This document shows positions 4,659 to 39,047 of a stretch of 64,000 nt of DNA, in pieces. Position 1 is the stretch's first letter, and the number at the start of each line of letters is the position of its first letter. The notes under the pieces are model-generated. The model was not told the origin of the DNA. It saw nothing but the letters and a program-made list of their open reading frames with translations, and ran no database searches. A program made the position numbers and the translations under genes. The stretch spans positions 80,910,001-80,974,000 of the forward strand of contig OZ241830.1 of the NCBI GenBank assembly GCA_965202585.1, read 5' to 3'. This stretch comes from Thalia democratica (Eukaryota).

Positions 4659-5149
4659 GTTTCTAGGTAGCGCAAAGCACAAATGTAAATCTTCTTTGTA
4701 TCTTTATAAAGTGTTGGCGTGTTGTTATGGCAGTCGGTTTTCTATATTCTTTTTTATTTATCATTTAAAATCTCAGTAAAAGACCACATCTAAACCTACT
4801 AAAATAAAATAAAAAAAAAGTTTTTGGTTAATTAACGGTTTTTATTTTTTCACCTTATTCTAAAGATTTCACAGGCTCCAATAAGCCAGAACTTAACAAG
4901 GTCACAGTTTTCAAATCATTAACAAATTAGTACTTGCTGCTTAGTTCCAGTTACTACACAAAAATTCTGTAGGACTTATTGGACTCACTAATTCGTGTAC
5001 AACTTATATTTTATTTGCAATTTTTATTGTTGTTTGGATTAACTTGCGTAATTATTAAAAATAGCTTTAGAATATTGTTATTAGTATAACAGCATTTGAA
5101 TAACGTTAGAATAAAGAGTAACCTTATTGCAAATATATGATTTACTTTT

Positions 5150-5550
5150 ATTTCTAACCCGCGATTATTTCTTACCCGATTATTTCTTATCCGATCAAAT
5201 CTAACCTGGTCACTTCTAAACTGATCATTTCTAACCTGATCACTTCTAACCCGATCACTTCTAACCTAATCACTTCTAACCCGATTAAATCTAACCTGAT
5301 CATTTCTAACCCGATCACTCTAACCTGAATACTTCTAAACTGATCATTTTGAACCCGATCACTTCTAACCTGATCAAATCTAACCTGATCACTTCTAAAC
5401 CGAACATTTCTAACCCGATCACTTCTAACCTGATCACTTCTAATCTGATCATTTCTAACCCGATCACTTCAAACACGATCATTTCTAACCTGATCACTTC
5501 TAACACAATCATTTCTAATCGCCATCGTTTTTGACCAGATCACTTTTAAA
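5150..5550 (+). repeat. 15-bp minisatellite (GATCACTTCTAACCC consensus, about 25 degenerate units), orphan array of the foldback family
   Basis: Same unit as the arrays at 2081-2215 and 4482-4653. No inverted partner found in the window. Followed by an AGGGTTGCC MITE end at 5556. Confidence 0.85.
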
Positions 5551-10800: not shown

Positions 10801-13799
10801 CTTTAAAGTGTAACAACCAAAATTAGCTCGTTTTATTTATTAGTTGTTTAATATTGTTATCTTAATAAACTGTTTGATATATTGAATTTTTGGTTGACTT
10901 GTAAAGTTTAATTATCATTTAATAAACATTTTCTAAACTTAATTTCCAACTTTTATGAAACAACTAAGTTTTTAATATCTATAAATTTTGAATTTGTAGT
11001 AATACGGATACTATAACAACATTACCTTTAAAAGCTTCTCATTATATTAAACATAACTATTTTCAATGTTACTTATTGTTATTTATTTTGGAAAGCATCA
11101 AAATATTTTACCACAGTTTTGTATTCTTCTCAGCAGTAGCGCTATGTAGCTATACAAATGGCGCTAAACTTAAAAGCTGGGATTAATTTAAACTAGTTAT
11201 CTCTCATACATATTATTTATAATGGGTGATTTTTTTAATTTTAAGTACATTTTTTGCTTGCTATTAACATAAAAACTTGCTAAAAATAGTATAGCCAAAT
11301 CCTTGTGTTTGAAAAATATTTATTATTGATAAAAATATTTTTTATAGCTTCAAGCAGCGTTTATTTAAAAAAAAACTCAAATGTTTTATGTTTGTAACAG
11401 CTTATTTATTTCATAAGACTTAAAAAATGTTGAAAGCTAGAAAAAAAGTAAAGTTAATTACTATTTTCTGGTTATTTTGATAAATCCAATTCAATTTCAA
11501 TAAATAGCTTCTATTGAAAAAAGTGTTAAATTTAGATCGTTTTAAATATAAATAAGAAATTTTAAAGCTTTGAAAAAGTTTATTTTGGAGTCGAACCAGT
11601 CATGAAATGTTACTGTTAATTGTTTTTAATTTATAAACTTCTCAAAATTAGCAAAAGTATCAATTACATGTAAACCAGCGTGAAAAACATAAACATGTTG
11701 AAACAATACACAAGTAATTCGATACTTTTGCTCGTTCAACTAATTAAAAAATTCATACAATCAACACAATTTGATACAATTCAACTTTGTTGAGTTGTTT
11801 AGCTCACTAACTTTTTGTCTATTATGTTAGCAAAAGTTTTTTTATACTTAAAGCAAATCATAAAAAAAAAATTACCAAAATTAGCATTTAAAATTTATTT
11901 ATACTTTACAAACTACTCGTACATGAAATTTTAAATTAACTTAAAATTCAAATTTAAAAATTATTTATTTTAACGTTTTTTGAATTATTTAATTTTTTTA
12001 TTTCTGGTAACCCTACTATACATTGCACAATCCAAAAGCGTCCTTTATGTAATAAAATTACTATTTTGACAATAAAATATACTGCTAATAAATTTCTTTA
12101 TAAGTTACTTTATATCTTATAACGTTTTGATTTTTTTCAATGACTTGTTCTAATCGTTAGATAGAATATTTTTTCTCAGTTCTTTGGGCAGATAAAAACT
12201 GTTTGTCAATTATTCTTAAAATCATTTAAAGATGCTTGTCTCTACGCTTTTTTTTTAATTATAACAATCCGTTGATAAAAGTTTATTTTATATATAAAAG
12301 AATTTTTTTAGTTTGAAAGTATAATTTACAAAACTTTTTTTTGTTATACCAAAAGAATACTCATTAATTCAGAAAAATTAACAAATTTAAACATAAAGAA
12401 GTTGTTGACCGAGTCAGTAATAAATGTTGGGTGCTATATCTTTATCTATTTTAGTTCAGAGGTCAATAACATTTTACAAGTAACGGTTCACATTAATCTG
12501 AAAAACTCTTTTGCGGGCCAGACTTGTTAGAAACAAGTCTTCGCAACCTACCTTAGTTCTGAAAATTTATACAAAAAAAATTAAGTTTTTTAAAATCAGA
12601 ATTTTAATGAAATCAATAAAAAAGTATCACGCTAGAACTTACTGAAAACCAAACTTAGTTACAATATAATACCTGTTGATATTTTTTGTAATTTATCTAA
12701 TTTTTTTGTTGCATAAACTGCTTAAAGCCAAAAGTATACTGTGGGTCTACACATGACAGGCAAGATCTTGTCAAAAACAAAAGTTGATATCTAAACAACA
12801 AAATACTAGTAGGGACCACTTTGTAAAATTAAACAAAAATTAAAAATATTACTACACAAGAATAAGCATGTATAGTCTTAGAATATTCTTCACAATAATA
12901 AAAAAAACTCTTTTATTAATATTGCAACAATTCATATCAAAGCAGCAACTTAAATCTTTGTTTTCAAAAATGTCTTGAAACATATTTTCAACCTTCGTCC
13001 CTTAGTTTTTTAGTTAGAATTGTCCCAGAAATCTAGTTTACAATCGCTCAACGTATAAAATCGTTACATTAACTTTTTTTTCATTTTCATGTACAATTAA
13101 AGGTCTTGGTAATATGGTAGAATCAAGTTTTTTTATAACTCACAGTTGAGAATTTATTGAAATTAATAATTCATCGTCACATAGAATATAGTTTCAGCAG
13201 TTGATTAGTTTATTGAACGACTAAAAATGCACTTAAAATATTTGGTCCCAGGACCTGGTGCACGCAAAAACATTTCGGTTATTGACCCGAACACAATTAA
13301 CGTTTTGTAAAGTACCCCTATCGGGATTTGATCCCGGGTCGTTGTATTGCAAGTATACGTTTGCAGAATGGCAGTTTTTACTCAAGTTTATTTTTTAAGA
13401 AGAATTTAGCTAATTCGACTTGTAATAAAAAAGTTTCTTTAAGTTCGTAGTTGTTTAAATAACTTTCAACGGTTGTTAACAGTAGCTTTGTTAGAGATAA
13501 TATTATTCAGTCAACAAACTCATAATAGTTACTAAAAATCAATTAGATGCATTGTATCATGTATGACTTTCAAAAGTAGAATTCTAAACTGACTAAAAAA
13601 ATTTTAAGCCATACAAAACCAAAATGGTTTGAAAACTACTGATTAGCAAAAGTTTTAAAACAACAACAACATTTCTAAACAGAATTGTTTATTTACTTAG
13701 TTTGTTATTTTACAACAACCTTTTCTTTTGTGAAAATAGTAACAACAGTTTAAAAAAGTAACAAATAACTTTACAGAATTTTTTTTACACATTGTCATC

Positions 13800-15210
13800 A
13801 TGGTACAAGTCGAAGTTTGGTATGGTGACCGAAACCTGAGTGTTGATATAGAGCTCATACACGACATCAGGCTTCTAAAGGTGAGATAACTGCATAAATG
13901 ATAGTTGTATAAATGTAGAGTTGTTTAAAATTCAAATTTCAGTGTTTTAAATCCAAAAACTCTTTTGAAGGTCTACTTTTTTATCTAAATTGTTATACCA
14001 TATGTTTATTTTACTTAAAGTTATTATACTACCTGTATGTTAATTAATATTTTTATTACTTGTTACCAACTTATCAATTAATTTAAATTAAAGGTGTTAT
14101 ACTACCTGTAAGTGAATTCATTCTTTTTTTTTTACTTGTTATCAACTTATCAATTAATTTAATTTAAAGGTATTATACTACTTGTATGTGAATTCGTTAT
14201 TTTTTTTACTTGTTACCAACTTATCAATTAATTTAATTTAAAGGTATTATACTACTTGTATGTGAATTCGTTATTTTTTTTTACTTGTTACCAACTTATC
14301 AACTAATTTAACTCGTAGGTGTACCTTCACTTCATACATGGTGTACCCTACCAGGACCTCAAACTGATGTACAAGGAAATGGAACTTGCCAACGGTATCA
14401 TCCTTCAGAGACTGAAAGATGTCTTTTTTCACGGAACAGGAATAAAATTGACCATGGCTACCAACTCTGAACCATTTGTAAGTATTTAAAAGTACATTTA
14501 GTAATATTTTTATTCGACTAATTTTTACATTTTTTTTAGATGTTTAATTTTTGTTTATCAACTATATAAATATTTGTCAGCTGTAGTAGAAATAACAGTT
14601 GTTTTAGATAGATATCATAAATTTTTATACGATGCTTTTAATGGCTTTTAATGAATTTACTTATCATTTTTAAATGTTTACATTTTATAGAAAAATTATT
14701 ATAATTAATTAGAGTAGTTTTCTTGATTATAAACAAAATTATACTATTTTGAATTATTTTAAAAACTGTAAAGTTATCCTATTCTTAATAAATAATTTAT
14801 CTTGTATATCTGTTTTACAGTCTAAACGATGTCAATAAAAAGTTATTAATAAAATCAAAAAGTACCTCCAACAAAAATAATTTGTAACTAACGTTTATAC
14901 CACGCTCAATTAAAATAAAGTAATTAGAGTAATCAAGAAAGCTGTAAATAATTTCCTCAACTGTCAGGTGTTCATTGAGGTCGTTCCATTCACATTGGGG
15001 GATTACCCGGGCAAAAGTATCCGGGGCCTGCTCTTCAGCTCCCTGGCAACCATCGAAGAAGTCAAGGGCGCCGTGGCGGGAAGGCTCGGTTGTTTCCATG
15101 GTAACGTCACCCTGATCTTCAATGGGAGGAGGTTGAGAAACGGGAGGACCCTCCTTAACTGCAACGTCAAGACCCACTCCGTGGTTCATTGCCATCTAAA
15201 CATGCAGTAA
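13800..15210 (+). CDS. Tandem di-ubiquitin-like protein, copy A (160 aa, 3 exons), no C-terminal Gly-Gly
   Basis: Exons 13800-13880 (MVQVEVWYGDRNLSVDIELIHDIRLLK), 14319-14477 (VYLHFIHGVPYQDLKLMYKEMEL...TNSEPF), 14968-15210 (VFIEVVPF...TIEEVKGAVAGRLG...VTLIFNGRRLRNGRTLLNCNVKTHSVVHCHLNMQ*). All introns GT-AG, phase 0. GVPYQDLKLMY and LIFNGRRL..GRTL match ubiquitin-fold patterns (GIPPDQQRLIF, LIFAGKQLEDGRTL). Structure is conserved in copy B. Confidence 0.85.
14015..14318 (+). repeat. About 75-78-bp intronic tandem repeat, 4 units, ending at the exon-2 acceptor of UBL copy A
   Basis: Unit aaggtattatactacttgtatgtgaattcgttatt(t)nacttgttaccaacttatcaattaatttaattt seen 4 times. Confidence 0.9.
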
Positions 15211-15981
15211 TGTTGAGGTGCCAATAATTAATAGTTTCACTCTCAGTAAGATATTGAGGGTGCATAACACTAGGTGGCTTTTAAGTTAGAACTTTAAGTG
15301 TATAATTGTGATTAGTATGCAATCGTTTACAAATAGTAGAGCTTGTTTAAAAATGTTTTGTACTATCAACTTTTTTATTAATATACTTTTTATTTTTTTT
15401 TTCTTGAGCCACCTCTGTTTTTTAATTTTAAATAATTCTGGCTGCATTGAGTTCAGAAGTTGCACTTTCGGGTAGTTCTTATTTTTTCTGAGCAAATGAG
15501 TTTCTTCGGGCTACATCACCCCGATGGTTCATAAAAACTATTAGGATTTTATGTTTGCCTTGAGGAAATTTATTTTGTTAAGTCAAAAAACTCTGCGGTT
15601 TTTATACATATGATAAAATACTTAGTTCGAGTTTTTATTTTTCTTTTAATTGCACTCAAACTGTCTTGACTGGTTTTGTGTTTTTAATGCTATTATTTTG
15701 TGATATTAGTGTTTATCGCAATTTATGTAAAGAATATATTAACTTGAATATAAACAGAAGTGTCTATATTTTATTTAAGTTTTTTTAATTTTAATTAAAG
15801 CTTCTTAAATATAAAGCTACAATATTATTGTATTTAACTATTACTAACATACATTCGTTTTATTTAGTTGAAAATTTTTCATGCCAATAAGTTGAGGACT
15901 AAACTTATGTAATTCTTGAACTTTTTTAAGTTAACTTTCAAATTCGTCTCAAAATTTTATGTATGATAATAGTATCTAAAG

Positions 15982-16185
15982 CAGGGTTTTTCAAACTTTT
16001 TTGCAAATGGCCCCCTTTAAAGAAATTGAAAAAGCAATGGCCCCCTTCAACAAGATTACTCATAAACTACGATAAAAAACACCGAAAACCTTTTTTTTTG
16101 TTCTTCGTCTGCAACTCAAGAATATCTAGTGTAAGTTTCAAGTTATAGCCTCATGACCCCCTAGGGCGCCACTTGGGAAACCCTG
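15982..16185. mobile_element. hAT-type MITE (204 bp), same family as 10456-10800
   Basis: TIRs cagggtttttcaa / ttgggaaaccctg; perfect 8-bp TSD atctaaag (15974-15981, 16186-16193). Confidence 0.92.
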
Positions 16186-16732
16186 ATCTAAAGTTATCTT
16201 AAGTTAAACTCAAAGTATGGCGAGCATAAAGAGACTTTAAATATATTTTTGTTACAAGTTTATTGTCGATGTCTATTGTTGCATCAGGCATCAAAAGCTA
16301 GACCACTTAAACTGAAAGTAAAAAGTTCATTTTGTTTAAAACAAAAGCTTAACTTAATTTAATTTTATAACTTAATAGATTAACATAAAATATTTTTGTA
16401 ACACACAAACTTATACTTATTTACGCTTCGATCCAACGAAAATTTGTCCGCTAGGTATGTAAAGTGGCCGACCCCTGGTATTATCTTACTTCACCAATTA
16501 GGGCTAAAACAATTACATTAAATTTAATATTTTGACCTTTTCAAGCTAGAAACATCTCATGCTCTCGAAGACACATCAAGATACTAACATTAAGAGCAAT
16601 CAATATCAATTGCATAACTTAGTATTTATACAAAGTTACGTCAAAGAAAAATTTGCAATTTTAAACCGACATTTTAATAATCTTTTTCGCTTTGCACCTT
16701 GTGGGATATCACCAAATAAAACTAATCTAGAC

Positions 16733-17579
16733 AAAGGTGTCCCAAAATGGGCATTTTAGAAATTGAGGTAGCGATAAGCTGCAAGGGGGACCCATGAGTA
16801 GTAAAGGAGCTGTTTTTTGTAAATTCCAAGTTTTAAAAAAAAGTTTTTTTTTTCCATATTTGGTATGAAACTAAACTTAAAATAACTGTCGTAGAAACAG
16901 TGTAATAACATTAAAAAGATACTGTAAACCTACTTTAATTGTGTTTTCATTTAACAAAACTTAAACTATTTATTTTTTCTATGGTAGATTTTTTGTGTTT
17001 AATCGAAACTTTCTTTCTTTACATGTCAATATAGTTTAAAATTCCAGGTTTTTATAGCAATCATGAAAGAACTGAGATTATTAAAAGGGCCACGAAACCG
17101 TAATTTTTAAATTACACTTGATATTCAGAAGTTAACGGCAAAAAGGTGCATACAGGGTTGCAAATGTTTTTGAAAAAAATTTTCCAGGTTTTTAAAATTA
17201 TACGTTTTAAGGTCTGCTTTTAGTTTTAAACTAAGTTTAAGGTAAAAAAACTGTGTTAGGTAGTATAACGACATTGAAAGTTTATTTTTAGCTTCTTTTA
17301 CTGTGTTTTTAAATAAATAAAAATTTATATATACGATAAATTTTGTGTCACATCGAAATTTTACTACTTAACATGTAAAATTGTTTAGAATTCCAGGTTT
17401 TTTGGCAACCCTGTGTATACAAAGGTAGTTTTGAAACTTACACTAGATATTCTAAAGTTGATGAAGACCAAAAAATAGGTTTAACATTATTTTTTGAGAG
17501 AGGGGGCTTTTCTTTTTTATGATTTAGCTTTTCTTTATTTCTCTAAAGGGTCTTATGAAAAAAACTTTGAGAAACCCTG
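16733..17579. mobile_element. Older hAT-type MITE of the same family carrying nested CAGGGTTGC(C)-family insertions
   Basis: Degenerate left TIR aaaggtgtcccaaa, right TIR tttgagaaaccctg, flanks atctagac/atttagac. Nested complete element 17153-17413 and a fragment at about 16810-17060. Confidence 0.6.
17153..17413. mobile_element. CAGGGTTGC(C)-TIR MITE
   Basis: cagggttgcaa ... ttggcaaccctg; flanks tgcata/tgtata; internal ttccaggttttt motifs shared with copies at 27510, 29060 and 51562. Confidence 0.8.
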
Positions 17580-18079
17580 ATTTAGACTTTAGTTGTATTT
17601 TTTTTTCGATCTTCTATTTTATTCTCTGTTTTAAGTCTGACGAAATATCACATTAAGGATTTCTCTTAAGTGCGATTTTGGCTATAAGGGGCAATAACAA
17701 GTAAGGTGGCAAAAAAGTAAAATAAACTAGTAATGGTATCTAATTTCATTTAACTTCTTGCCAAGGTGCTTCTCGCAAACAAAAACCATGCTGACTGAAA
17801 TAAAATTGACTACATAGGGTAAGTGGCTCTTGGAGTTTTTATTTATAAAGGTTAGAAAGGATATAAACATAATTATAACAAGTTAGAAATTAAAAACGGA
17901 AGAAATGTGTTTTTGAACATTTATTAGCGAAACAAAATAAATGCGTGTTTACAATAAAAACTACTTTATAAAGAAAACATTCAAAAGCTCGTTCAGTATG
18001 AAAATTTACCTAAACAACCATCACATAAATGTGTAATGAAAAAAAGTTCTACTACTTCGTAACTATTCAGGTGATTTCC

Positions 18080-21000
18080 CTAATAAGGTCCGGACCTTCC
18101 CCTTCCTGAACCTCCTCTCCACTTACCCCCGCCCTGCCTGTCGCCTCCCGATCTGTCGCCTCCTCTGTTGCGGTCGCCTCCGTATCCGCCTCTGCCCCCC
18201 GATCCTGTTCAAGTTGCAATTTGTTAAAAATTTTGCTTAATATGTAAAATAAAGTTTGGTTATTTTGCAAGAAAACTAAATATAAAACTAGTACTATATA
18301 ATAATTATTAACAATTATGACGTCATACTCACCCCTGTCACCGCCGTAACTCCTTCCTCCTCCCTGGTAATCGTCGCCGCCCCTGTCTCCGTACCTTCCC
18401 CCACCGCCCCTGTTGCCACCGCCCCTCCTGTCGAATCCTCCCCTTCCGCCGCCCCTTCCCCCGCGGAAACCTCCACCTCGCGACCCTCCGCGACCCCGGC
18501 CCCCTTTTTCTCCTGTTCGAAGATAGTTTGTTGATTATTGCGTAACTTAGAACGTAAATAAGTTGTAATTATTATTTTATTAAATTTACAGTTTCCAGAC
18601 TTTTCAGGTTTCTTGACAACCCTGTTATCAAAAGGCATGCCCTCACTTTCAAACTCTCTGAAATGCCCTAAATTTCATGATGAGTTGTATTTGTTAACTA
18701 ACCATATATATGCCATCGGTTTTAAAGTTCTCCTGAATACAGCACAGCAAAAACAATTATATATAGTTAAAAGCATGTTTACAAACATGACGTTACAAAA
18801 TCTTGCGATGACAATTTAACTTAACATTACACCTGCCATTGCGACAATTATTATCAATTAGAAAAATAAGTTGATCAAGAGCTTATAGCGTTTTTCGTGT
18901 TTGACTTAGAAAATTGCATTAAAATTATATAACAGAATTATTAAAGTGGAGAAATTAAGAGGTTTGATTAGTTAAGTTACAATGCAATAAACATTGTTTT
19001 GAATCTTTTAAGACTAACTATAAGAAGTTTTTTGATTTAATTATGTTTATATTTTAAAACTTCCTTAAACTTACTATATGTTTTGTATTCAAATTTTACA
19101 CTGTTATGATCTTTATGTTTGTCAAAAACATAATGATAAAAGTATTGATTAAATGAGTTTGATTTTTAACTTGCTGTTAAAAAAGTTTGAAAGGAAAAGG
19201 TTTTTGTTTGTATAAGATATGTTACAATTCAATTGACGCAAATCAAAAGTAAAGATTAAGTAAAAAGCTTTCTTTTGAACTGTCAGCATTTACATTTTTA
19301 ATAACAACAACTTTTCCATCAAAGTTTATTTAGCTTCTTAAATATTTAAGAAATAACTAGTAAAAATATACATGGCATTTTTCCCACAAAAATCTTAAAT
19401 TTATTAAAACTAAATGTCATATACTTAACATTATAAACTGCTTATTATAAATAAAAACTCTTACTAACCAGTCCAAGCTTTTCTTTGTGTGAAACTGACT
19501 GACAATTCGCCTTGTCCGTTAAATGGTTTCTCTGAAAAGAAATAAAAATATTGTGACTTGTCATCTTTGCTTCATTTGAGATCATTTTTAAATGAAAATT
19601 ATTTAAAACACTGATAATCAGTTTCAAGGAGTATTTTCCTAATACAATTTGTTTCAAACTTTAAAATCAAATATTGGAAACAAAAGACACAAACTTAGAA
19701 GAGCGACTAAGTTTAAATTTAATTTTTAAATATTTCCACATGGAGCAGTTAAGTTTAAGTTCAAAAAATAATAATGCGACAAAAACTAACTGTTAAACCA
19801 ATTAATAGCAGCATGGGCGCTCGGTGGGTCGTCATAAGTTACTGTGCACTCGCCTGTAAATAACTATATGATTACAAAATATTATTGGTAATTAAACAAG
19901 TATTTACTTTCAAAGTAGTTACTTGGTTACCAAATAGAATAATCTATTAATCTTAGTACTTATGGTTGAAACTTTACCAGTTCTCAAATTAAAATCTAAG
20001 GAGTTACAACATATGTATTGAAGTACATTAGCTCTTTTGATATATTTTTCATTTATTTTTATTACCTTTAGGCTGGCCAGTTTCCTTGTCATTATACATG
20101 TAAATCTTCAACTCTCCAGTTCGTTTGTCTTTCTGTTACCGATTTATACATACAATCATAATAATTCAAAGCTTATTTCTTAAAACCACAAATAAATTTA
20201 TAATTAAGAAAAAAAGACTTGTTTATATGCTATAAAAAAAATTTTAATCATCAACAACTTTTTATAGTCGTTTTTAAATGTAAATGGTTATTTTAAAACA
20301 ATTCTTGATATGTTAAAATACATGAATCTTGCGTCTTACATACTCACTTTAATCTATAATTACAAATGTATTTTGTAAACCGAACTAGTTTTTAAACTGA
20401 CATCACACAACAAATCAAACCTTGACAATGCCGATTTGTCCGAAGAAGTCACCAATTTGCTGACTGGTCACATTTTTCGGCAGTCCGCTGACGAAAATGG
20501 TGTCGCTGGGTGGCCCACTCTGCACTTCCTGTTGCACCGGTTGCGCCGCTGTTCGTTGTATTTGCAATTTAATTTAAATTTTAACTATTTTTACAAATTA
20601 TCAACATCAGTTAATAGAGGAATCGTTTTTTTTAGAACCTTTTTCATTAAGACATTTGTTCAACCCAATCATTGATAGTTTTTCTGGTAATTAATAAATA
20701 AGTGACTCAATTCTTTGGGGATAGCTCTTAATTCAAATATGATCATGAATGTCAATAAATAAATGCATGGTTGCAGGTTCATTGCTTTCTTTAATGCTTT
20801 CTTAGAGACCCAATATATGTATATAAGATATTAATAACAAAACCATGTATTTCCAAAAACCTAAGAAAATAAGTATATGAAAAACTAACTTTTATTCAAT
20901 TCTTTAAAACTTAATAACCTTCAAATAATAGCACTGAAAGCTTGGACCAATATATTTATATATATTTATGTGTATTTTGAGATTTTTAACAATTTTAGTC

Positions 21001-24000
21001 TTCAAGTTGCCCAGTATTTTCTAAATAAACAATTTGATTTTAGATTACTATTAGAAATATTTTTCACAATACTGGTCTGGATAGCTCAAAAAATTTTGTA
21101 TGTGACCAAATCAATGCTAGTTATCAATACTTTCTTTTTTTTCAAGCTAATAACAAATATTTTTGCATTGTCAGTTATTTTTACCAATGTCAGGTTTTAA
21201 ACAATTTCTACAGGAATAAACATTAATATTGTTACATGACAATTCAAATTCTTAAGACTATATCCCAAAAAGTAGTACAAATTTGAAAAAAAAAATATGT
21301 AGATCTTATTAATATCTAAAAGCCACTTTTTATTTTGCAAAATCTTAAACATTTATAAAGATACTTCAAAATTACAAAAAATAACTATGTTTTTTACTTT
21401 ATTTAAGCCATATCTGAGAATATATTTAATGTTTTGCAAAAAGAAAAAAATGGCTCGTAGATATTATTAGGACCATCATATATATTTTTTTTATTTGAAA
21501 AATATACATTACTTTTTAAGTTGTGGCCCTTTCAATTTTTTTAAGAATTTGGATTGTCCGAATTCGAATAGTCGTGCACACCATTAATATATTAGTTAAT
21601 TTTTTGTTTATTCAAGAATTTTCATTTTTCTACACATTGGCTAGTTGCAACAGCCAATAAATTTGTTTTGCAAAAACTTTGAGCCACTAGTCAGATGAAG
21701 TTTTTGCATTTAAAAAAATTGTAAATAATAAACATAGAAGTTTCATTTTCTTTTTTACTGTCATTTTAAAATTAAAATAAATGTACTAAATTTCCAAGTC
21801 TAGTAGTTGCCAATGAAACTAATTAAGTATAAAAAAGATAAGAAAAAAACATTGCTTAATAAGGAAGGAACAAGATATTTAAACAACTACTGTAACTATA
21901 AGTATGATTTTTTTCTAAATAAGTAAACATTTAAAGACCTATTATTCAGTATGCATGACAAGGCTAAAATATTTGGTCATATATACTGAATTTAACTGCA
22001 GGTTGTATATTTTGCATAATATGTATTTTTTTGCACTCAGATCTTTTTGAAATATAAAACCATTTATTTTTATCATTTATAAAACCAAAGATTGGTTTGA
22101 AGACATTGATTGGTATAGAGTGTTCAACGCATAAATAGAGAAAATAAAATACTATCTGCGGATAAGATTTCAAAGAATTTAAGAAAGATTATTAAAAAAT
22201 AGAACTATTGCACTTTTATCTATTAACAAGTGATAGTAAACTAATATACCGTAAATTACAAGTTTCTCCTGATCAAGTAATACTTAGTAGATTTCTAAAA
22301 TGAGGACATAACTAAACATAACAAGGTTGGGATATACAACTCAAACTTTGGAATATGTAGTTCAAGTAATATAATTCAACTCAAATTTTTGATATAAGGT
22401 ATACAAGAAAACAAATTATGTGTTTAATTAATAAGATTAAGCTATACTTCTAAGATTTTGCAAAATCATAACAAAACCATGGTAGGTTTTCTGAGTAATG
22501 TTAAAATAATATCAATAAATTATCTGTAAATTATGTACAACTCAGTAAAGAAATTGACTTGTTGTTAACAAATAACCAGCATAACACAACTAGGCCATTT
22601 CTGTTAATTATATTTATAGACTGTTCGTTTTTTATTTGAATGCAGCTTTAAGCAAGTATTATTTTAAAATAGTTAGATTTTGATTTCCATGTTTAGTAAT
22701 CAACTATTTAGTAAGGTATTTTCAACTTCGTTTACTACGCGTAGCTTAAACAAAGCTGTCTAAATAAATCTATATTTGTCTTTTTCAATATTTCTTTATA
22801 AACTCCTTTATTCGATCATTTTGTTTATTTTATTTTGAATTTGTACATATGATAAGCATATGTTTAAATAAGACCTCAAGAGATCTAACCAAGATAATCA
22901 ATTCGAAATTTATGAGGGTCTTTGATGGGTACTAAGTTAACTTCCAGGCTGTGATAAAAAACATCTCAAAAGATTAAGTTTTCTTTAAATTATGAAATAC
23001 ATAGCAGTAGCAGTTTTGAAGTGCATTTACTCTAAATTACTCTTTTGGGTACATTATGGCTGTAGTTAATACTTTTAATATCAAATACTATACTAATCGT
23101 ACAGGTAATATAACTTTAATGAATGCTTAAAACATAAAACTTATAAGATTAAACTTTAAAAAAATTGTGTTTTTTTTACCAAGCATAACTACAAAAATAT
23201 ACTAAATAGTTACTCTTTTAAAGTTAAAATCAAACAGTAAAAACACCAATGGTGTGGAAATATTAAAACAACACTTATACTAATGATACTTTTTTTTGTG
23301 AAAATACCTTGTGGCCTGTTGCTCTGATAACCATTTCCATTTGAGTCGTTGCCTCGGTTTCCACTGTAGATATGAATTGTAACTTGTTAATTTACTTGTG
23401 CATATGTGATGCACCAATTTCTAATAAGACAACCGTATACAGGTGTGTTGTGAAATAGTAAAGCTCGCTTTTTTATATATTCTTGCAAAAATACTAGTAA
23501 CTCTATTAGTAAATAATCTATTTAACAATATTTTATTAAAAACTATTAAATTATGAAATACATAGCAGTGGCAATTTTGAACTGCATTTACCTTTAACTT
23601 TTTTATATTTACTCTAATTTATATACCCTCATTTACAACAAAACGTTGTCAATTAATATTCTTAAGTAATAAAACTCAAATACTAAACTATTTTATACAC
23701 CTGACAGAGACCAGCAACAACTTAGTAAAATATAAATGGTGTATCAGGTTTTTTAAATGTAGATTCTTATAATTATTGACAAAAAAGTTGTTTTGAATGA
23801 GTAAAATTTGGTAAAACTGTATACGTTTTTGGTAATTTCAGAAAGGATTAAGTTTAAATTCTCAAACCATGTTTATTTCAAAGCTTTTCTACATAACTTT
23901 TTTATAGTTTTCTAATATACATTAAAATATATTTCCGCCAAACATTACTATTTGGAAATAAAACTAAGTCTTCCTTCAAAAATGATTTTATAATTACGTT

Positions 24001-27000
24001 CGGTTGATAAATAGCTAGAGCTATTTTTAAATATATTAAGACTCTAATTGTGTTCTATAATCTACTTAACAGTTAATTCATACAAAATTTTTAATAATTC
24101 ATTAAATATAATAATTTGTTATCCATTAGCAATCGAAGTCCAGATCTGAAAAACTAAATTGATATACAAAAATACAGCAGTACAACAATATTCTAATACT
24201 ACTAATCTTTACTTTTTTTAATCATTCAAGGTGACCACTTAAACTTGATTCATACAGTAAAAACTTTATTATTTTCATATAAGTGTTTTTTCTTTCCGAA
24301 TAAATTAGACTGTTCAATTTTGGTATTATTTACAAGACTAAAACATTTCATGATAGCTTTCTTCAGCATACAAGCAATTTATGTCAAGCAAAACATTTTT
24401 TGTTTTTTTTTTTTAATTTATTTCTGACTACATATACACCAATTAGTTTAACTTTTACAGTTTACAATGTCTGCAAAAATATACCATTTTTAATAACATT
24501 ACATAATAATACAGGCCTTATGCGAATTTATTCATTTTCATTGTAAACTGTGACAATTATTAAATACTTCTATCATTAGAACAAGATCTGTATATGTGGT
24601 CACCTCGAATATTTCAGATGGTTAGTAATTTAATTAGTTCTCAGTTGATTTTGTTATGCTTGAGTTGATGTTAGTAAAATACTCTAAATAACTTATTTAT
24701 AAAAAATTATATATGTACTACTACTTAAGATTTATTGTATCTAGTTTGATCACAAAGAATAGTCCATGAAAAAAAAGTTATATTTGTATCCATATACCAA
24801 AAAACGCTTTTATGTATGTACACTATAGTAACCCCAATTTGCTTTTTTTTTTTATTCAAATTTAAATTTTTAACTTACCTTCAATAAACAGATGAGCGCT
24901 ACTTTTGCATATAATTTTGGAAATAAGAAAGACTTTAACTCAGATAATAAATTTAAATTTTACCATTTATCCCAGTACTGTTAATTTAATCTTTACAGAT
25001 TAATTTACTTCAACTCTGTTTGTCAAAAATATTTGAAAACTTATGCATTTATTATTATAATTAAGCAACAATCGATTATATTTTTTTCAACTCCCCTTAT
25101 AATTCCCTTCACTAAATTAGCTAAACTCTATTAGAAACATGTTGAAATTTATACACAACAACCAAATTTTCATTTTATCATTTACCCCAATCCCCTTCTA
25201 TTCCCCTTTACACACCAACTTATCCCAACCATACTTATGAGAAACGTACAAGATATTACTCACCGGTTATCGTATCCGCCTTGTCTGTTGTCGTAACCCC
25301 CTCTACTGTCGCCTCTGTTGTCATCTCTCCTGTCGTAACCCCCTTGTCTGTCCATGTCACGACCTGAATAATTTTATATCATGTTATAGTTTAAAAACAT
25401 AATAATAATTTCTTTTGTTAGCTAATTGGCAACAAATTTGTAATTTGAGAAATGAAAACTAATATTTATTGTTTATAAATAATTATTTTTTTTAACCTCT
25501 TCCACTATTGCCACCATATCCTCCTCTGTCATTTCCTCGGCCCCCTCTGTTGTCGTACTGTAAAAAAAATTAAACTAAAATTTTGGAATAAATAGAACCT
25601 GTTAAGTTAGTTTGGCAGAAAAACTTAAACTTTAGTGTTTAAGTGTAGCACAATTGATTACTTCTACTTTATTTAACTTTTAAAATGTTTTAATTATTTA
25701 TATTCTAAAAAACCAACGCCTCCGCGGTCATTTCCACCGTCAAATCTTCCACCACCTCTGTTGGACGGAGGACCATCTCTTCTCTGGTAATCGTCTCTGG
25801 GCTTGTTGTCACCGTACGGTGCCCTTCCGCCCTGGTTACCAGCATCGGGTCTTCCAAAGCCTCCTTGACCACCTTGCTGACCGTAACCCTTGTTTTGCTG
25901 CTGGCCACCATAACCTTGACCCTGCTGCTGTCCATACCCCTTGTTCTGGCCACCCTGCTGCTGTCCATAGCCCTGGCTCTGGTTTCCCTGCTGGCCATAT
26001 CCCTGACCTTGCTGTTGGCCGTACCCTTTGTTCTGGCCCTGTTGGCCGCCGTAGCCTCCTTGCTGCTGACCGTACTGCTGCTGCCCTTGTTGAGGTGGCT
26101 GGCTGGCACCCTGAGATGCTGGCGGCTTTCCGTTGCCACTCTGCTGCCCTTGTTGAGGTTGCTGACCGTACTGCTGTTGGCCGTACTGTCCTTGTTGTCC
26201 ATAACCCTGCGGCTGTCCATACTGAGACTGCTGGGTCTGGGGTTGCTGACCGTATTGGCCCTGTTGCTGTTGGGGTGGCTTCTGCTGACCGTACTGCTGG
26301 GCCCCGTTTCCGGCAGGTTGCTGGCCGTATCCTTGTTGCTGTTGGTAACCTCCGTACTGGCCTGTTTGATTGGTTTTTTAATGAAATTGCTAAAACACAG
26401 TTTTTAAATATGTATAACCAGGTGAGTTTTTGAATAACTTGTATAATAATTTAACAATTTGAAGCTGTTGTGGCTAATTGATATCAAGGTTAAATTAGGG
26501 ACATAAAATTTTATTAAAGGTGAATGTTTAGTAAGCTGGAAATATTTAAGCAAACTGGGAACTTGAATTCAAAGTTTATTAAAAATACAAAGAACATAAA
26601 AGTTCTGATTTCAAAATCAAATTAATCACCTCCTTGCTGTTGCTGACCATAACCCTGGTATCCTCCTGCTTGAGGGGGTTTTGTTTCAGCAGGTTTGCTG
26701 TCACCTGCCGCTTTGTTGTCTGCTGGGGGCACTGGTGCTGGTGGTGGTGCTGCAAATATTTATTTTTTTTTTAACTTTTAAACCTTTATTACTCACATGA
26801 ACCTCTAAACTTAAATTTCACACTTTTTTTTTACTTGACTATATTGCAGCAAAGATACATGGGGCTAAAAACTAATGCTTTGTTTTATAATCAGTACTTC
26901 GTCTTTTTTTATCTATTTTAGTTTGTTAAAAAATACTTCATATTTTTAGTAAAATTTTAAGTTGATTTGACTTGAATGCAACATAATTTGACAAAAACCT

Positions 27001-31538: not shown

Positions 31539-33732
31539 ATTCGATTCCAATATTTCACTTTCTTAATAAACTAAAGTTTTAGATAATAAAATAAAATTCC
31601 AAATTTAATTCATGACTTGAATGTTGTTTGGGAGGGAAAATTTTATGTGAACTGTGGGTAATTTATTTAATTTGGCTTATTTCATGTGCTAGAGCAGGGA
31701 GAAAAAATCTTTACTTGTATCATTTAAACTACTCATCAGTTTTTATATAAAAAATGTCTAAATCCTTTTTTTTTTTTTAATTATGAGGATTTTATATAAA
31801 TATTAAATTTAATAAATCAATTTAAAAGTTTTAGATTTTTGGAAACTACTTATTTTACATAAAAAATAAGTTAGAAAAACATATATTAACTTTTAAGCAA
31901 AGTTAAAACAAACTTTATATACTAATCTTTATATAATAATCGAAAAATTCTTTTAAGGACTTTGAATTACTTTAACATTTCTTAAAATATTTTTACAATT
32001 GAAGAATTTAAACTAAAATATTTTAGTAAACAACCATGAAACTACTTTATTCTAATTTTTCTTGTATAAAACTTACTTTATTCTTTTAGAAGTCCTATTC
32101 TAAGTCAAAAAAAGCAAGCATTATAACAATTTATTTTTGAAGAAATAACTGTGATAAATTTTTATTTTTATTAACTGTTTTTTATTTAGAAAAATTTTAA
32201 AGCAAATTAAAAATAGCATTATTTACAACTTAGTTGCCTTCTTAGCGATGAGTGTGTTGCCTGTAAAACTCAAGCATGAAATATTAAATTATAAATTCAC
32301 ATACCTTATGAGTTATAAATTAAAGTTTTGGGAAACCTGTTTTACATACATAACAAAAATCTAGTAGGTAGTGAACTACTCTCAACACAGAGTTTATATT
32401 TTTGAGAGACACAGTAAGTTAAACTTCAAATAATTTTCTCAAATAACTCAGTAAAAATTTTAAGAAATTAATATTTACTAAAAAAATCTATAGAAAGGCA
32501 AAAAAGATTAACCAATTTGTAGAATTAATATTTTAGCAAAAACATTATTTTGGTTAGATATTTTAAACAAAAATGCCATTTTGACTTAAAAATTTAAACA
32601 ACAATAAAATTTTGAGTTCATGCGTACAGAGGTTTATTAATGTTTAAAGATTAGAATTATTTTTCAATTTAGTTAAAAAACTTTAAAATTTTATTATAAA
32701 TAATAGAATTTTATTTTGAAGCCTTCTGTAAATTGTTAAATCGTTTAGATTTTAAGCTAAGTATGATGTGTAAACTGAAAGGTAGTTAATTATAAACTAA
32801 AAACAATGTCGATATTAGTTTAAATGTTTTAATGTTTAAATAAACTTTGTTATTAACCAATTTGAAAACAGAACTTAATTTTTTCGGACAAGAAGTTAAA
32901 AGGTATCCGACTCGATAACCGAAAGGTTTTTTCGTGCATTAAGTCCAAGGACATAACATTTTTAGCGTCTTTTTTGTCGTTTTATAAAGTATAATTATAG
33001 AAAAAAACACAAACAAAAATAAAAAAGTTAATTTATTCATTGCAAAGTTGTGACAAACATTTCGTTCATAGAAAAAACATTTAAATCATAACATTTTCAC
33101 TACATTTCTAAGTTACAAAAAGAACAATAAAATCTTGAATTTATTATTAAATACTACCAGCAACTTAGACACTATATGCATATAATTAGAAAATAATGTG
33201 GTTACATAAACAGAATCACTTTCTACAGAGCCCACTTGAAAGGTTTTTAAATAATTTGTTGTTAGAAAATAAAAGTTATTATATCATTAGAAAATTCAAA
33301 TTTGAACATATATAAAAACAGCGTGGTTTTTTGACTTAACAAAATAAATTCCCTCAAAGAAAACATAAAAACCCATAAGTTTTTATGAACTCATCGGGGT
33401 GATGTAGCCCGAAGAAACTCATTTGCTTAGAAAAAATAAGAATTACCCGAAAGTTCAACTCCTGAACTCACTGTAGACAGAATTAATTAAAATAAAAAAA
33501 CAGAGGTGGCTCAAAGAACAAAAATAAAAATTGTGCATTAATAAAAAAATTAATAGAGCAAAATATTTTCAAAAAAGCTCTACTATTTGTAAACGATTGC
33601 ATACTAAACACCATTATACACTTAAAGTTCTAATTTAAAAGCCACCTAGTGTTATGCACCCTCATTAAAAAAAATCCTACTAATTAAATACTACTAAATT
33701 ATTAATTAATTATTATTATTGCCATCTCAGCA

Positions 33733-35590
33733 TTATTGCATGTTTAGATGACAATAAACCACTGCCATCTTTTTAACATTGCAACTGAGCAGAGTTCTGA
33801 AGTTTGCCAGCTTCCTTCCGTTGAACATGAGCGTGGCGCGGTCGACGTAACTTGCCGGATAACCGAGTCTCCTGACCACAGCTCCCTTCACTTCTCCGAT
33901 CGTCTCCAGGGAGCTGAAGAGCAGACCCTGGATACTTCTGCCCTCATGGTTCCAATTGGTGAAAATAACTTTGACCTCTTCAAGGAATACCTGACAGATT
34001 AGGATATTATTTATAATTTTATTGATTACTCTATTGTTTTTCAATTGAGCGCTGTATAATATATGTTTATTGAACGAAAAAAAAATACGCTCAAATTTTT
34101 GGTCCAAGGACCTGTTGTATGAAAAAACCTTCGGTTATCGAGTCATACACCAGGATACAGTTTAAAGTCATGTCCAGGACAAGCTACACGTTAGTTGCTT
34201 TGAAATATTTTTGTTGAAGACACTGTTTGATTTTATTAGTAACTATTCAACGACATCATCTTAAAGAGATATTCCAAATAAACTAACAATAGGTTATTTT
34301 TTTTTTTTTGATTCCAGACAGTATAATTAAGTTAATAATCAAGAAAACTACTCTAATTAGATTAACTTCTCTAAACAATGTGAACATTTGAATATACCAA
34401 GTAAAATCATTATTAGCCAATAAAAACACCATTTAGAAGAGAATATTTATTTTAAAAAATTGTTATTTGACAACAGCTGGCAAGTATTTAAGTACTTGTA
34501 TAATAAACAAACAAAAATTAAATATTCAAAAAAAAGATGAAAAAAAAATATTTAGTCAAATAAAATTATTACAAGCACTTACAAATGGGTCAGAGTTGGT
34601 GGTCATAGTCAAAGTCATTGTGACGTCATTGAAATACACGTCTTTCATTCTCTGAAGGATGAGGCAGTCTGCCAACTTTATTCCTTGGTGCATCAGTTTG
34701 AGATTTTGGTAGGGAACACCATGTATTACGTGAAGGTACACCTTTAATTTAAATTAATTGATAAGTTGGTAACAAGTAAAAAAAAAAAATTAATGATTTC
34801 ACATACAGGTAGTATAAAACCTTTAATTTAAATTAATTGATAAGTTGGTAACAAGTAAAAAAAAAAAATTAATGGTTTCACATACAGGTAGTATAAAACC
34901 TTTAATTTAAATTAATTGATAAGTTGGTAACAAGTAAAAAAAAAAAATTAATGATTTCACATACAGGTAGTATAAAACCTTTAATTTAAATTAATTGATA
35001 AGTTGGTAACAAGTAAAAAAAAAAAATTAATGATTTCACATACAAGTAGTATAAAACCTTTAATTTAAATTAATTGATAAGTTGGTAACAAGTAAAAAAA
35101 AAAATTAATGATTTCACATACAGGTAGTATAAAACCTTTAATTTAAATTAATTGATAAGTTGGTAACAAGTAAAAAAAAAAAATTAATGGTTTCACATAC
35201 AGGTAGTATAAAACCTTTAATTTAAATTAATTGATAAGTTGGTAACAAGTAAGAAAAAAATTAATGATTTCACATACAGGTAGTATAAAACCTTTAATTT
35301 AAATTAATTGATAAGTTGGTAACAAGTAAGAAAAAAATTAATGAATACACATACAAGTAGTATAATACCTTTAAGTAAAATAACTAAATGGTATAACAAT
35401 TTAAATAAAAAAGTATATGTCGCGAAGGTAGACCTTCAAAAGAGTTTTTGTATTTAAAACATTGAAATTTTTATTTAAAACAACTCGTACATTTATGCAG
35501 TTATCTAACCTTCAGAAGCATGACGTCATTACTTAGGTCCATGTTCACAGTCAGACTGCGATTACCATACCTAACTTCGACTTGTTCCAT
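33733..35590 (-). CDS. Tandem di-ubiquitin-like protein, copy B (165 aa, 3 exons), no C-terminal Gly-Gly
   Basis: Exons 35510-35590 (MEQVEVRYGNRSLTVNMDLSNDVMLLK), 34583-34741 (VYLHVIHGVPYQNLKLMHQGIKL...TNSDPF), 33733-33990 (VFLEEVK...SIQGLLFSSLETIGEVKGAVVRRLG...TLMFNGRKLANFRTLLSCNVKKMAVVYCHLNMQ*). Same intron positions and phases as copy A. Confidence 0.85.
34742..35372 (-). repeat. 77-79-bp intronic minisatellite, 8 near-identical units, abutting the exon-2 acceptor of UBL copy B
   Basis: Unit starts at 34742, 34821, 34900, 34979, 35058, 35137, 35215 and 35292; homologous to the 4-unit array in copy A. Confidence 0.95.
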
Positions 35591-36732
35591 TACAAATTAT
35601 ATGTATAAAGTTTCTGCGTAATTAAAAAAATGTTACTGCATTGAATTATTATTATTTACATGAAAAATTACTTGCCGTACAATACGATAACTACTTGTAT
35701 CAAAGTGTAGCAAATTTACAGTTTTGTTGCTCAGTATTTAAAAAGATGGTTTTGTTGTTAAACTGTTATAATTAAATTTGAAAGTTTTCAAAACCCTTCT
35801 TTTATTGTCATGCAAGATATCGTGTTGGTTTTTAGTAAATGTAAAAAAAAAAAAAGAATACGACTACTTTTAATAAACAGTTGTGTTTTAAACGGACATT
35901 GACAATTATTTGATAGAAAATAATTGAAATAAAAAACTTTTAAAAACTTATTAAAATTAACTGAATACTTTTTAAACAGAAATAAAACCATGAGTTTTAA
36001 ACCTAAACTAGCTGAAACTGCTGAAAATATATTTTACCTTGCGATCAATAAATAGTTTCAGTAAATCCTAAATTGTGATTTATTACGAACCTATATTCTA
36101 TTATGACAAACAAAATATAAGTATTAATGTATTTACTAATGATGGGAAGTTGTTAAATAAATTTTTGGGGCCAGTTCTGACCCTAAAATTGAACGCAAGA
36201 TGTTTTGATATTTCGACGGTTCGTTATCTCTCTAAATGTTTGATACAAGTTTTTTATTTACTTAAACTAAATGGTCACATAATAAAAGCTGGCTTTTTGT
36301 CAACCAGGCATTAAGTATTTACTGTCCTGCAACTAAAATTAAAAAACAGGAGTTAAAAACTTTATGGTTAACCAGAAATGTCACGTTGTCAAGGCTCTTC
36401 TGATTGGTTGAAAATTTTATGTTTAAGTGGATACTTTTTTTTTGTATTATTTGTTGTATTTTTAGGCTAAGGGTGTTAGGGATAATATTTTTAGTTATGA
36501 TAATTTACTGCTGTATTAATATCTTATCTAACTTGTATAATAAAATGAACGAAAAAAATTAAGATTTTACAACTCCATCCCACAATCTCCTTTTTTTTTG
36601 AACAGATATAAATAAAAGATACAAAATTAAGAAAGACTTACGAATAGTGCTAATAAGTTTACAACAAATGTTCAATTAATTTTATTTTTAGTAAAATTTG
36701 CTTTTAAAAAGCTTAAATAAGCACTTTAGTTT

Positions 36733-36842
36733 TGGACAAGACGTTAAAAAGGTATCCAAGTGGTCTCGATAACCGAAAGATTCTTTGTGCACCAGGTCCT
36801 AAGACCAAATATTTTGAGCGTATTTTTTTGTCGTTCAATAAA
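36733..36842 (+). repeat. Representative of a short (about 100-130 bp) dispersed repeat family with at least 8 copies in the window
   Basis: Consensus ...aaaaggtatcc..g(t)gactcgataaccgaaaggttcttcgtgcaccaggtcctaggaccaaatattttaagcg...gtcgttcaataaa. Copies at about 13208-13305(-), 32885-32985(+), 34064-34180(-), 36733-36842(+), 40495-40570(-), 42760-42862(+), 44225-44325(+), 58950-59045(+), plus a fragment at 40893. Confidence 0.85.
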
Positions 36843-39047
36843 ATATAATAATAATAATGAAGTATATAGCTTTTTAAATAAGTCCGCTTAGACTATTTTG
36901 AACTGTTACTAAAATAAACAGCTTACTATTTATTTCTGTTTTGCTGAAAAGGTTCTTTATCATATTCAAAAAAGTTATTTTTTATTCTCAATTCTTATAC
37001 AAAGGAAAGTTCATACTTAAAAAAACAATATACTTATTCAAAATATTTAAACACAAAAATACATAGAGACTACAATATCTTAATATTGGTTTCATTTTTT
37101 AAGTTTAAACAGTTATCATCGGTTGACAATATTTGGAAATATATTTTATTTATTGATTAAAAAATAAACGCAAAACAAGTCGGGTAAATAAGTTACTAAA
37201 ATATTTTAAAACGGTCTGATTTATCCTAACTTTTATAACTTCATTAAGATTGAATTTTCCATTGGTTATGTGTATTGCTTTTAGCTTTATAAAAATATAT
37301 AATTTTTAGTGGTTTTTATAAAAAACAGCTAATAAAACTTATATTGAAGTCTTTTTTCTTATAACGTTTTAAAAGTTTTTGTTTTCAATGTAAAATACAT
37401 AAAACTGTATTTTATTGTATATATAGTTTAAAGATCAAAATAGTAGTTTTATGTGTCCTACACCAATAAAAAACTTTTTAAAACGTTATAAGATATGAAT
37501 TAACTAATAAAGAAACGTATTAGCAGTGTAACTTAGTTATCAAAATAGTAACTTTATTATTTTATGGACGTTTTTGGATTATGACTTATATATTAAAGTT
37601 GCCAGAAATAAAAAAATATTAAAATTAAATAGACTTTTACTTAAATTAATATTCCAATATATATTTAATTTTTAAGTTGATTTAAAATGTCATATACGAG
37701 TTTTTTAGTGATATAAATTAATTTTGAATGTTATTCACTTAAATTTTCAAATTTTAAATAAATGATATGATTTTTGCAATTGGTTACTTATCCCTGAGTT
37801 AAAAAAAAAATTGTATACAAATTTGAAAAGCATAAGTGAGCTAAGACTCAACAAAGTTGAATTGTATCAAATTGTGTTGATTGTATGATTTTTTTAATTA
37901 GTTCTAACGAGCAAAAGTATCAAGTTACTTGTATATTGTTTCAACATGTTTATGTTTTTACATGTAATTGATACTTTTGCTAATTTTGAGCAGTTTATAA
38001 ATTAAAAACAATTATCAGTAACATTTTATGACTGGTGAAAAAATAGGTCCTTGATAAAAATTAAAAAATTGAGTTATTTACCTTTAAATGTTTAAATTTG
38101 AACGCTCTTGCTTAATAAAAAGATATTAACACCATTTTAATCAACACATATTTACATAATGTGTTTGGATTTACTTAAGTAGTAAAAAAAATAATTAGTT
38201 TTTTGTGCAACACTTTAACAACTTTTTTTAAATAAGACTGCTTTGGGAAACAATATCACAAAAATTTATTTAAAGAATTATTAAGATTTAAACTTATTAG
38301 TTCAACAAATTCAAAATTTTCAAGCTCAAGGAATTGTATTGAAACTTTTAAATCAAAATTCAGTGTTATATATTTGAAACTTAAAATTATAAATGTGACA
38401 AAGTCTAAATTAATCCCAGCTTTTAATTTTAGCGCCATTTTTATAGCTACATAGCGCTACTGCTGATAAGGATGCAAAATTGTGGTAAATATTTTGATGC
38501 TTTTAAAAGTAAATACCAATAAGTAACATTGAAAATACTTATGTTTTATATAGTGAGAAGCTTTTTTAGGTAACATGTCATAAATTTGAAAACTCATTAA
38601 CAAAAAAGCTTTTTAAATTATGTTTGTTTACTAGAAGTTACAATTTATTTTATAAAATAGTAACATTACAGTCTTACCAAAGTTTAATATCCCTTAAATA
38701 ATAAAATAACTCAAATAAGTTTTGCTACATTTATAATATTTTCTTAACAAATAGCTAAAGCCAGCTAATTTTGTTTTTATACTTTACAGTAATAAAAACA
38801 ATAACTGAACAACATAGCCAGAAAAATTATAATCTTTTTTTCAAGAATTTTACAGGTTAAATTAGCTAGAATAATGTTGGTTTTAGATGTTCAAAAATTT
38901 AACCGAACATTAGATAAATATTAAACTGATCTATTAGATTAAAGTTAGTTTAGGTGTGCATGTACTTGTCAACCGGATTTTGTGGGTAAGTATTTATCCA
39001 CAAGTATTTCTTGTCTAAACTACTACTAAAGGAGGTTTTTAAGATTA

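Follow-up and report, generated by a model that had tools for sequence, protein, structure and literature searches.

A 64-kb stretch of the genome of the pelagic marine animal Thalia democratica (contig OZ241830.1, positions 80,910,001 to 80,974,000; hereafter, the window) contains two diverged paralogues, copies A and B, that face inward, are intact, and are each divided into three exons. Each copy would yield a soluble protein of ~160 amino acids (aa) made up of two beta-grasp (ubiquitin-like, UBL) domains and nothing else, and neither protein has the C-terminal Gly-Gly of ubiquitin. On balance, we consider it probable that A and B are real genes, maintained by selection, for a non-conjugated di-UBL protein that acts by binding; we are more confident of a real, tail-less gene than of its mode of action. 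In vertebrates, free-standing proteins with two ubiquitin-like domains serve as conjugated immune modifiers (ISG15 and FAT10). Here, an ISG15-like architecture is found without the conjugation tail, maintained by selection, and in a genome with a very large expansion of such genes. Non-conjugatable ubiquitin-like proteins with an ISG15-like layout are a known kind, of which A and B are an intron-bearing variant.

Gene models of copies A and B

The genome is large (802 Mb) and very AT-rich (~25% GC), and the window is part of an 81.4-Mb contig, one end of which is ~0.5 Mb away. Copy A occupies positions 13800-15210 on the forward strand and encodes 160 aa, and copy B occupies 35590-33733 on the reverse strand and encodes 165 aa (Table 1; all positions are those of the window unless another contig is named). 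A pair of inward-pointing, three-exon paralogues had been proposed at these positions in an earlier reading made from the letters alone (the sequence-only reading), and our exon and intron reading of both copies confirms it. All introns are of the GT-AG type, lie in phase 0, and occupy identical positions in the two copies, with all four splice junctions retained. Within the first domain, residue 27/28 marks the site of intron 1; the site of intron 2, residue 80/81, coincides exactly with the domain boundary. An in-frame stop precedes the ATG by 20 codons in A and by 3 codons in B, which excludes a hidden N-terminal exon contiguous with exon 1 in that frame. The exons have a GC content of 42-54% (0.58-0.61 at third codon positions) and the introns 20-24%. 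The two proteins are 62% identical. We infer that A and B are old paralogues of a real protein-coding gene and are probably transcribed and spliced.

Domains and C-terminal tail

The C-terminal halves of both proteins pass the cut-off (25.4 bits) of the Pfam ubiquitin model PF00240, with scores of 39.7 bits for A (E 4e-10) and 27.0 bits for B (E 4e-6), and a second, independent profile of ubiquitin scores them at 39.8 and 30.1 bits, respectively. When the PDB was searched with a profile of the two C-terminal domains, ubiquitin was the top match, and the best 60 solved relatives were ubiquitin, polyubiquitin, and engineered ubiquitin variants; neither ISG15 nor FAT10 was among these 60. By these profile scores, the C-terminal domain of A and B is a true ubiquitin-family domain. 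A medium-confidence AlphaFold2 model computed from a two-row alignment of the C-terminal domains (pLDDT 70) has the order strand-strand-helix-three strands, which is the order of secondary structure in ubiquitin.

The N-terminal domain is more remote. Spliced from exons 1 and 2, it reaches 11-12 bits with a ubiquitin-domain profile derived from polyubiquitin-like matches to exon 3 of A, and hhalign pairs its positions 9-58 with positions 9-58 of the ubiquitin profile, in the expected register (probability 72%, P 3e-5). These alignments point to a probable, much more diverged ubiquitin (beta-grasp) fold. Of the two tandem ubiquitin folds of the sequence-only reading, the C-terminal one is supported by the sequence profiles and the N-terminal one is likely.

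Mapped on ubiquitin, the C-terminal domain retains K27 and G47 in both copies, and I44 and H68 in A, where B has Met and Tyr; Arg stands in place of K48 and His in place of V70. The tail C-H-L-N-M-Q aligns to ubiquitin residues 69-74, and the chain stops at residue 74, without G75-G76. The full ends are HCHLNMQ in A and YCHLNMQ in B, and the last 20 residues contain no Gly, in agreement with the absence of a C-terminal Gly-Gly noted earlier. The first domain ends N-S-E/D-P-F at the position of ubiquitin's R-G-G, and neither unit carries a di-glycine. The stretch before strand 2, at the site of the Leu8 loop of ubiquitin, falls outside the profile alignment. It is longer and not the same in A as in B, so the binding partner may differ between the copies.

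Purifying selection and the divergence of exons and introns

Comparison of A with B by the Nei-Gojobori method gives a nonsynonymous divergence (dN) of 0.24 and a synonymous divergence (dS) of 1.06, for a ratio (omega) of 0.23 (Fisher p 2.8e-12); taken by domain, omega is 0.27 and 0.19. Purifying selection on A and B is clear.

The coding and non-coding parts of the two genes have diverged to different degrees. At four-fold degenerate sites of identical codons, 23/49 positions differ (47%), as against 193/969 positions (20%) in the aligned non-coding gene body (Fisher p 4e-5). Among the non-coding parts, intron 2 is the most divergent (28%), a block 3' of the stop codon differs by 12-14%, and the first 130 nt of intron 1 differ by 11%. 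Two other sources were considered. A mutation bias of GC-rich exons, as a general effect behind the high dS, was rejected, given that at a paralogue locus dS between the genome and a Tara Oceans contig (0.097) equals the flank value (~0.10). Dispersed repeats as the source of the intron and 3'-flank similarity were rejected for 13800-15619, a span found only in A, B, and an unplaced contig, C725; they were accepted for 13199-13294 and in part for 11000-12243.

The 3' block is 86-88% identical between the copies, even though synonymous sites are near saturation, and is found in the genome only at A, B, and C725. It is non-coding, because A and B differ there by 1-nt insertions and deletions, and it is probably a 3' untranslated region (UTR). 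Neither the block nor the window as a whole has a match in Rfam, and a consensus fold of the block, computed from the two sequences, shows no compensatory changes. Intron 1 contains the same tandem repeat in both copies. Each unit carries a copy of the pyrimidine tract, the AG, and the initial bases belonging to the true exon-2 acceptor, and the arrays thereby yield four to eight look-alike 3' splice sites; use of any of these would lead to a stop within one repeat unit.

That the introns and 3' block are better kept than the exons is best explained by gene conversion that spared the diverged exons, or by selective constraint acting in the non-coding sequence. Under the former, conversion between the inverted arms that contain A and B would homogenize the non-coding parts, and selection would remove tracts that overwrite functionally diverged exons. 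A comparable pattern is known for the primate red and green opsin genes. Purifying selection on splicing control by the repeated acceptor units or on a regulatory 3' UTR, in place of conversion, is possible, if rather unlikely in our estimate. It would account for a non-coding similarity limited to the transcribed part plus a few patches upstream, for the failure of the sequences just upstream of the ATGs and of the first ~40 nt past the stops to align, and for the presence of acceptor-like repeat units in intron 1 of both copies. Yet 449/490 nt of intron 2 align, which exceeds what discrete regulatory elements would need, and inverted repeats are a classic substrate for gene conversion. Exons that differ more than introns between inverted paralogues are a possible signature of selection against gene conversion.

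Variation within the species may be seen in the only public sequencing runs that contain this DNA, which come from one sample and are available as contigs. A contig of ~711 nt differs from the reference at 36/374 positions (~10%) over 35427-35800, an interval that spans exon 1 of B and its upstream sequence, and no reference-type contig over this interval was present in these runs. Exon 1 of the divergent version has an intact frame; 4 of its changes are synonymous and 4 are replacements, 3 of which give the residue found in copy A. This version is either a very divergent allele or the product of patchy A-to-B conversion.

Relatives within and beyond the genome

Profile searches of the genome with the C-terminal domain and with exon 2 gave strong scores only at A, B, and C725. 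For the exon-2 profile, these are the only matches in the genome. The next match to the C-terminal profile (E 2e-4) is an intronless open reading frame (ORF) of 176 aa at C1:43532754-43533281 (C1:43.53 Mb), the only member of a wider superfamily that was matched. It contains two stretches of PF00240; its first unit ends L-R-L-R-D-P and the protein ends C-E-L-N-I-S-Q, so that it shares with A and B the tail pattern C-x-L-N-x(1,2)-Q. It is 23-29% identical to A and B, about as distant from them as they are from ubiquitin, and when folded alone it gives a pLDDT of 36. Relatives of this ORF occur on Tara Oceans metagenome contigs, where they are 77-94% identical, with flanks 90% identical. These orthologues also have no terminal Gly and evolve with an omega of 0.21-0.25, which indicates that tail-less di-UBLs are maintained by selection in this lineage. 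Their occurrence in plankton metagenomes is evidence for a pelagic marine organism; cellulose synthase (PF03552), tried as a check on a tunicate label, gave no match, an outcome without diagnostic weight.

At least 68 intronless ORFs, each ~160-190 aa long and with a pair of UBL domains, make up the superfamily. About 40 of them lie in one 260-kb cluster at C5:19.93-20.19 Mb, and others are on C1, C2, and C9. Their C-termini are varied, and a Gly-Gly end was found in 0/7 of those extracted. A census of the genome with the Pfam ubiquitin model returned 648 first-look candidates, with 152 matches among the 150 that were scored. On the chromosome that carries A and B, another di-UBL gene lies 12.7 Mb upstream; it has no similarity to either copy. 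A and B probably form a separate, intron-bearing branch in a very large, genome-wide expansion of two-UBL genes that lack Gly-Gly. A lineage-specific, non-conjugatable di-UBL family, as put forward in the sequence-only reading, accordingly holds with respect to the missing Gly-Gly and the missing named orthologue, but the family is not isolated.

Searches outside the genome found no relative of A and B closer than ubiquitin-like proteins. A phmmer search with exon 3 of A against 1.84 billion representative proteins found only polyubiquitin and other multi-UBL proteins, at ~37% and at most ~40% identity per domain. Word-based searches with the stop-free frames around exon 3 of A and B, in which proteins of 54-233 aa were eligible, gave no match. 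Two scans of JGI metagenome contigs with the C-terminal and exon-2 profiles also gave none, and a feature search of a protein atlas with exon 2 returned only matches at the level of chance (at most 0.88). The genes had not been recognized as any named gene, and these searches agree: no orthologue of a known UBL protein was found, and the nearest solved relative is ubiquitin.

Other ubiquitin-like sequences were encountered in the same genome. Dense arrays of ubiquitin-like exons occur on C9 (6.57, 6.90, 9.59-9.71, and 44.49 Mb), on C5 at 69.85 Mb, and on C10 at 34.33 Mb; the arrayed exons match positions 1-34 or 31-72 of the Pfam ubiquitin model, and their units are apparently split by an intron near 31-34. 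Additionally, an ORF for a ubiquitin-eL40 fusion (C7:32055645-32055857) ends L-R-L-K-G-G and carries many substitutions in ubiquitin relative to the canonical animal sequence. Ubiquitin is almost invariant in animals and such a substituted form is unusual; this ORF may be a paralogue that exists beside a canonical copy.

Comparison with known ubiquitin-like proteins

The best sequence relative of the C-terminal domain is ubiquitin, or linear di-ubiquitin as encoded by polyubiquitin genes (~37% identity). Like polyubiquitin, A and B consist of two tandem units whose domain boundary is the unit boundary, marked here by intron 2, and like ubiquitin, the C-terminal domain of A retains K27, I44, G47, and H68. 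Unlike polyubiquitin, A and B have no G75-G76 on either unit, a strongly diverged N-terminal unit, and three exons, and they are predicted to be neither cleavable into monomers nor conjugatable.

ISG15 is similar in layout, likewise a protein of ~160 aa with two tandem UBL domains and nothing else. ISG15, however, ends LRLRGG and is conjugated via UBA7, whereas A and B end NMQ. They are not members of the ISG15 family: they differ in the key step and are nearer to ubiquitin than to ISG15. According to PMC9722776, ISG15 is reported only from vertebrates. FAT10 (UBD) also resembles A and B in its two tandem UBL domains and length of ~165 aa. Unlike A and B, it has a free C-terminal Gly-Gly, by which it is conjugated via UBA6, and no specific sequence similarity to it was found among the best 60 solved relatives.

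The closest functional analogy is offered by Hub1/UBL5 and by the paired SUMO-like domains of Rad60/Esc2/NIP45, which have a ubiquitin fold, no Gly-Gly tail, and a non-covalent mode of binding. Hub1 differs from A and B in having a single domain, and in the Rad60 family the SUMO-like domains terminate a longer protein. No extra N-terminal region is present in A or B, and the Rad60-SLD models score below their cut-offs (PF11976, 16.3 bits against 23.8; PF13881, 15.4 bits against 23). Nor do A and B resemble the C-terminal di-UBL of OASL-type proteins. In place of a fusion behind an oligoadenylate-synthase domain, in-frame stops precede both ATGs, the sequences upstream show no similarity between A and B, and the arms hold no long ORF. 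Finally, A and B share their size, two UBL domains, and lack of Gly-Gly with the intronless ORFs of the same genome, from which they differ by two introns and by an N-terminal domain exon that has no match elsewhere in the genome.

Proposed mode of action and alternatives

A and B probably derive from a head-to-tail dimer of ubiquitin. Adenylation by E1 enzymes and conjugation of ubiquitin-like proteins require a C-terminal glycine. A and B have none, which would make both steps impossible and non-covalent action most likely. In such a role, the proteins would mimic ubiquitin or linear di-ubiquitin and occupy ubiquitin-binding partners as adaptors or decoys; candidate partners are receptors, shuttle factors, and enzymes that act on ubiquitin chains. 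Three features fit a role in binding, although they do not prove it: an Ile44 surface that is retained in part, a tail that does not vary, and the copy-specific stretch before strand 2. If A and B are expressed, they would be natural di-ubiquitin mimics whose partners could reveal how the readers of ubiquitin chains are regulated or decoyed.

Several observations weigh against this interpretation. A search for sequencing runs that could show transcription of A and B found only two, both non-RNA and from one sample, and the protein and metagenome searches found no orthologue of either copy. Exon 2, which was scanned alone, has no match in Pfam, and the N-terminal domain lies below Pfam detection. 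Moreover, the AlphaFold2 model of the C-terminal domain was not recognized as ubiquitin by Foldseek (best E 1.4) or by VIA-align (best Z 3.8), and for this reason it is the sequence profiles that carry the fold assignment.

The first two of these points, together with the stops carried by many members of the wider expansion, would also be expected if A and B were untranscribed or decaying relics of a ubiquitin expansion, with no present function. We regard this as improbable. Both reading frames run uninterrupted for 160 and 165 codons even though synonymous divergence is saturated, omega is 0.23 (p 3e-12), the four splice junctions are retained in both copies, and the frame is preserved even in the divergent B exon 1 of the public runs. 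Still less probable, and in our judgment very unlikely, is that A and B remain covalent modifiers, either by a non-canonical route or with a glycine tail supplied by an unmapped 3' exon. The ISG15/FAT10-like architecture and the well-conserved 370-nt block past each stop codon could be taken in its favor. However, the single-base insertions and deletions that separate the copies in that block mark it as non-coding, both copies and the nearest paralogue family have no terminal Gly, and the end CHLNMQ is identical in A and B. We know of no E1 that activates a C-terminal Gln.

Binding by a selected, non-conjugated di-UBL, our preferred reading, might also be extended to the wider expansion. It is conceivable, although we think it doubtful, that A and B belong to a lineage-specific system of many dozen genes for non-conjugatable di-ubiquitin mimics, diversified by selection, with exons kept distinct despite conversion and alleles that diverge by ~10%, whose products would serve as specific decoys or adaptors. 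If such a system exists, its roles could include, for instance, defence against the ubiquitin-handling effectors of pathogens, or self/non-self or gamete recognition, and it would amount to a remodelled layer of ubiquitin signalling unknown in other chordates.

Inverted arms, contig C725, and the FET gene

The two genes lie in inverted arms, aligned by BLAST as 11022-15619 against 38573-33300, whose inner ends are 17.68 kb apart. The sequence-only reading had described a ~5-kb inverted duplication with a spacing of ~17.7 kb. The inversion and the spacing hold, but the arms are a patchy mosaic and not a uniform 5-kb duplicate. The transcribed span 13800-15619 aligns throughout with the right arm at 69-89% identity, whereas A and B cannot be aligned over the 300 nt that precede their ATGs (53% identity). 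Farther out, patches of the left arm at 11022-11194 and 11595-12128 are 90% and 76% identical to the right arm, respectively. These distal patches belong to a low-copy repeat that has further copies at C6:78.27 Mb and C6:5.47 Mb (72-77% identity). Positions 13199-13294 are a dispersed repeat of ~90 nt, for which the genome yields more than 1,500 first-look candidates and of which intron 2 of B has a copy (34065-34141); it is probably a small element resembling a short interspersed element (SINE) or a miniature inverted-repeat transposable element (MITE). The gene body and 3' block, on the other hand, occur genome-wide only in A, B, and C725. The inverted layout is probably no more than the outcome of how the duplication occurred.

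Contig C725 is 100% identical to A over window positions 12993-16017, introns included, and is colinear with the window from the A arm into the spacer, up to 17326, in the reference orientation. We considered C725 as a third gene or as evidence of constraint and rejected both, in view of its complete identity to A over 3 kb that include introns. Most likely, C725 represents a haplotig or a duplicate made in assembly, and it is uninformative on selection. Beyond the A arm, C725 and the window are only 78-91% identical, and a minisatellite-like array at window positions 4470-5554 is expanded to more than 1 kb at two sites of C725, 18637-19819 and 22653-24078. If C725 and the window are two haplotypes, there is a strong structural difference between them here.

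Table 1. Features of the copies A and B, their arms, and the spacer (positions in the window).
Feature	Position	Strand	Description
Copy A exon 1	13800..13880	+	27 codons; start ATG; first two strands of N-terminal UBL; GT donor 13881
Copy A exon 2	14319..14477	+	53 codons; remainder of N-terminal UBL; AG acceptor 14317-14318, GT donor 14478
Copy A exon 3	14968..15210	+	80 codons and stop; entire C-terminal UBL; ends CHLNMQ
Copy B exon 1	35510..35590	-	read directly from the sequence
Copy B exon 2	34583..34741	-	62% amino-acid identity to A exon 2
Copy B exon 3	33733..33990	-	85 codons and stop; C-terminal UBL; ends CHLNMQ
Tandem repeat, A intron 1	14008..14313	+	74 nt x 4.1
Tandem repeat, B intron 1	34740..35381	-	79 nt x 8.2, 96% matches
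Conserved non-coding block 3' of A	15252..15619	+	~370 nt, 86-88% identical to 33300-33667
Conserved non-coding block 3' of B	33300..33667	-	counterpart of 15252..15619
Left-arm distal patches	11022..12128	.	match 37480-38573 in inverted order and two other sites on the same chromosome
Right-arm distal patches	37480..38573	.	counterpart of 11022..12128
FET-type gene in spacer	17600..26800 (outer limits approximate)	-	G/Q/Y-rich, RRM and RGG exons

The spacer between the arms encloses a FET-type gene, as had been claimed; we find three of its exons on the minus strand, one open and G/Q/Y-rich (~25.7-26.4 kb), one for RRM_1 (20418-20567), and one with RGG repeats (~18.3-18.6 kb). The sequence-only reading had suggested that recombination between the arms could allow the FET gene to invert, and in its strongest form this would make the arms a working switch that flips the gene between two orientations. 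Inverted repeats that bracket an entire gene have a suitable geometry for this. We nonetheless hold a switch to be extremely unlikely: the identity of the arms is patchy (69-90%), with a longest identical run of 43 nt, inversion of a whole gene together with its own flanks gives no obvious change in expression, and C725, which runs from arm A into the spacer as far as window position 17326, has the reference orientation.

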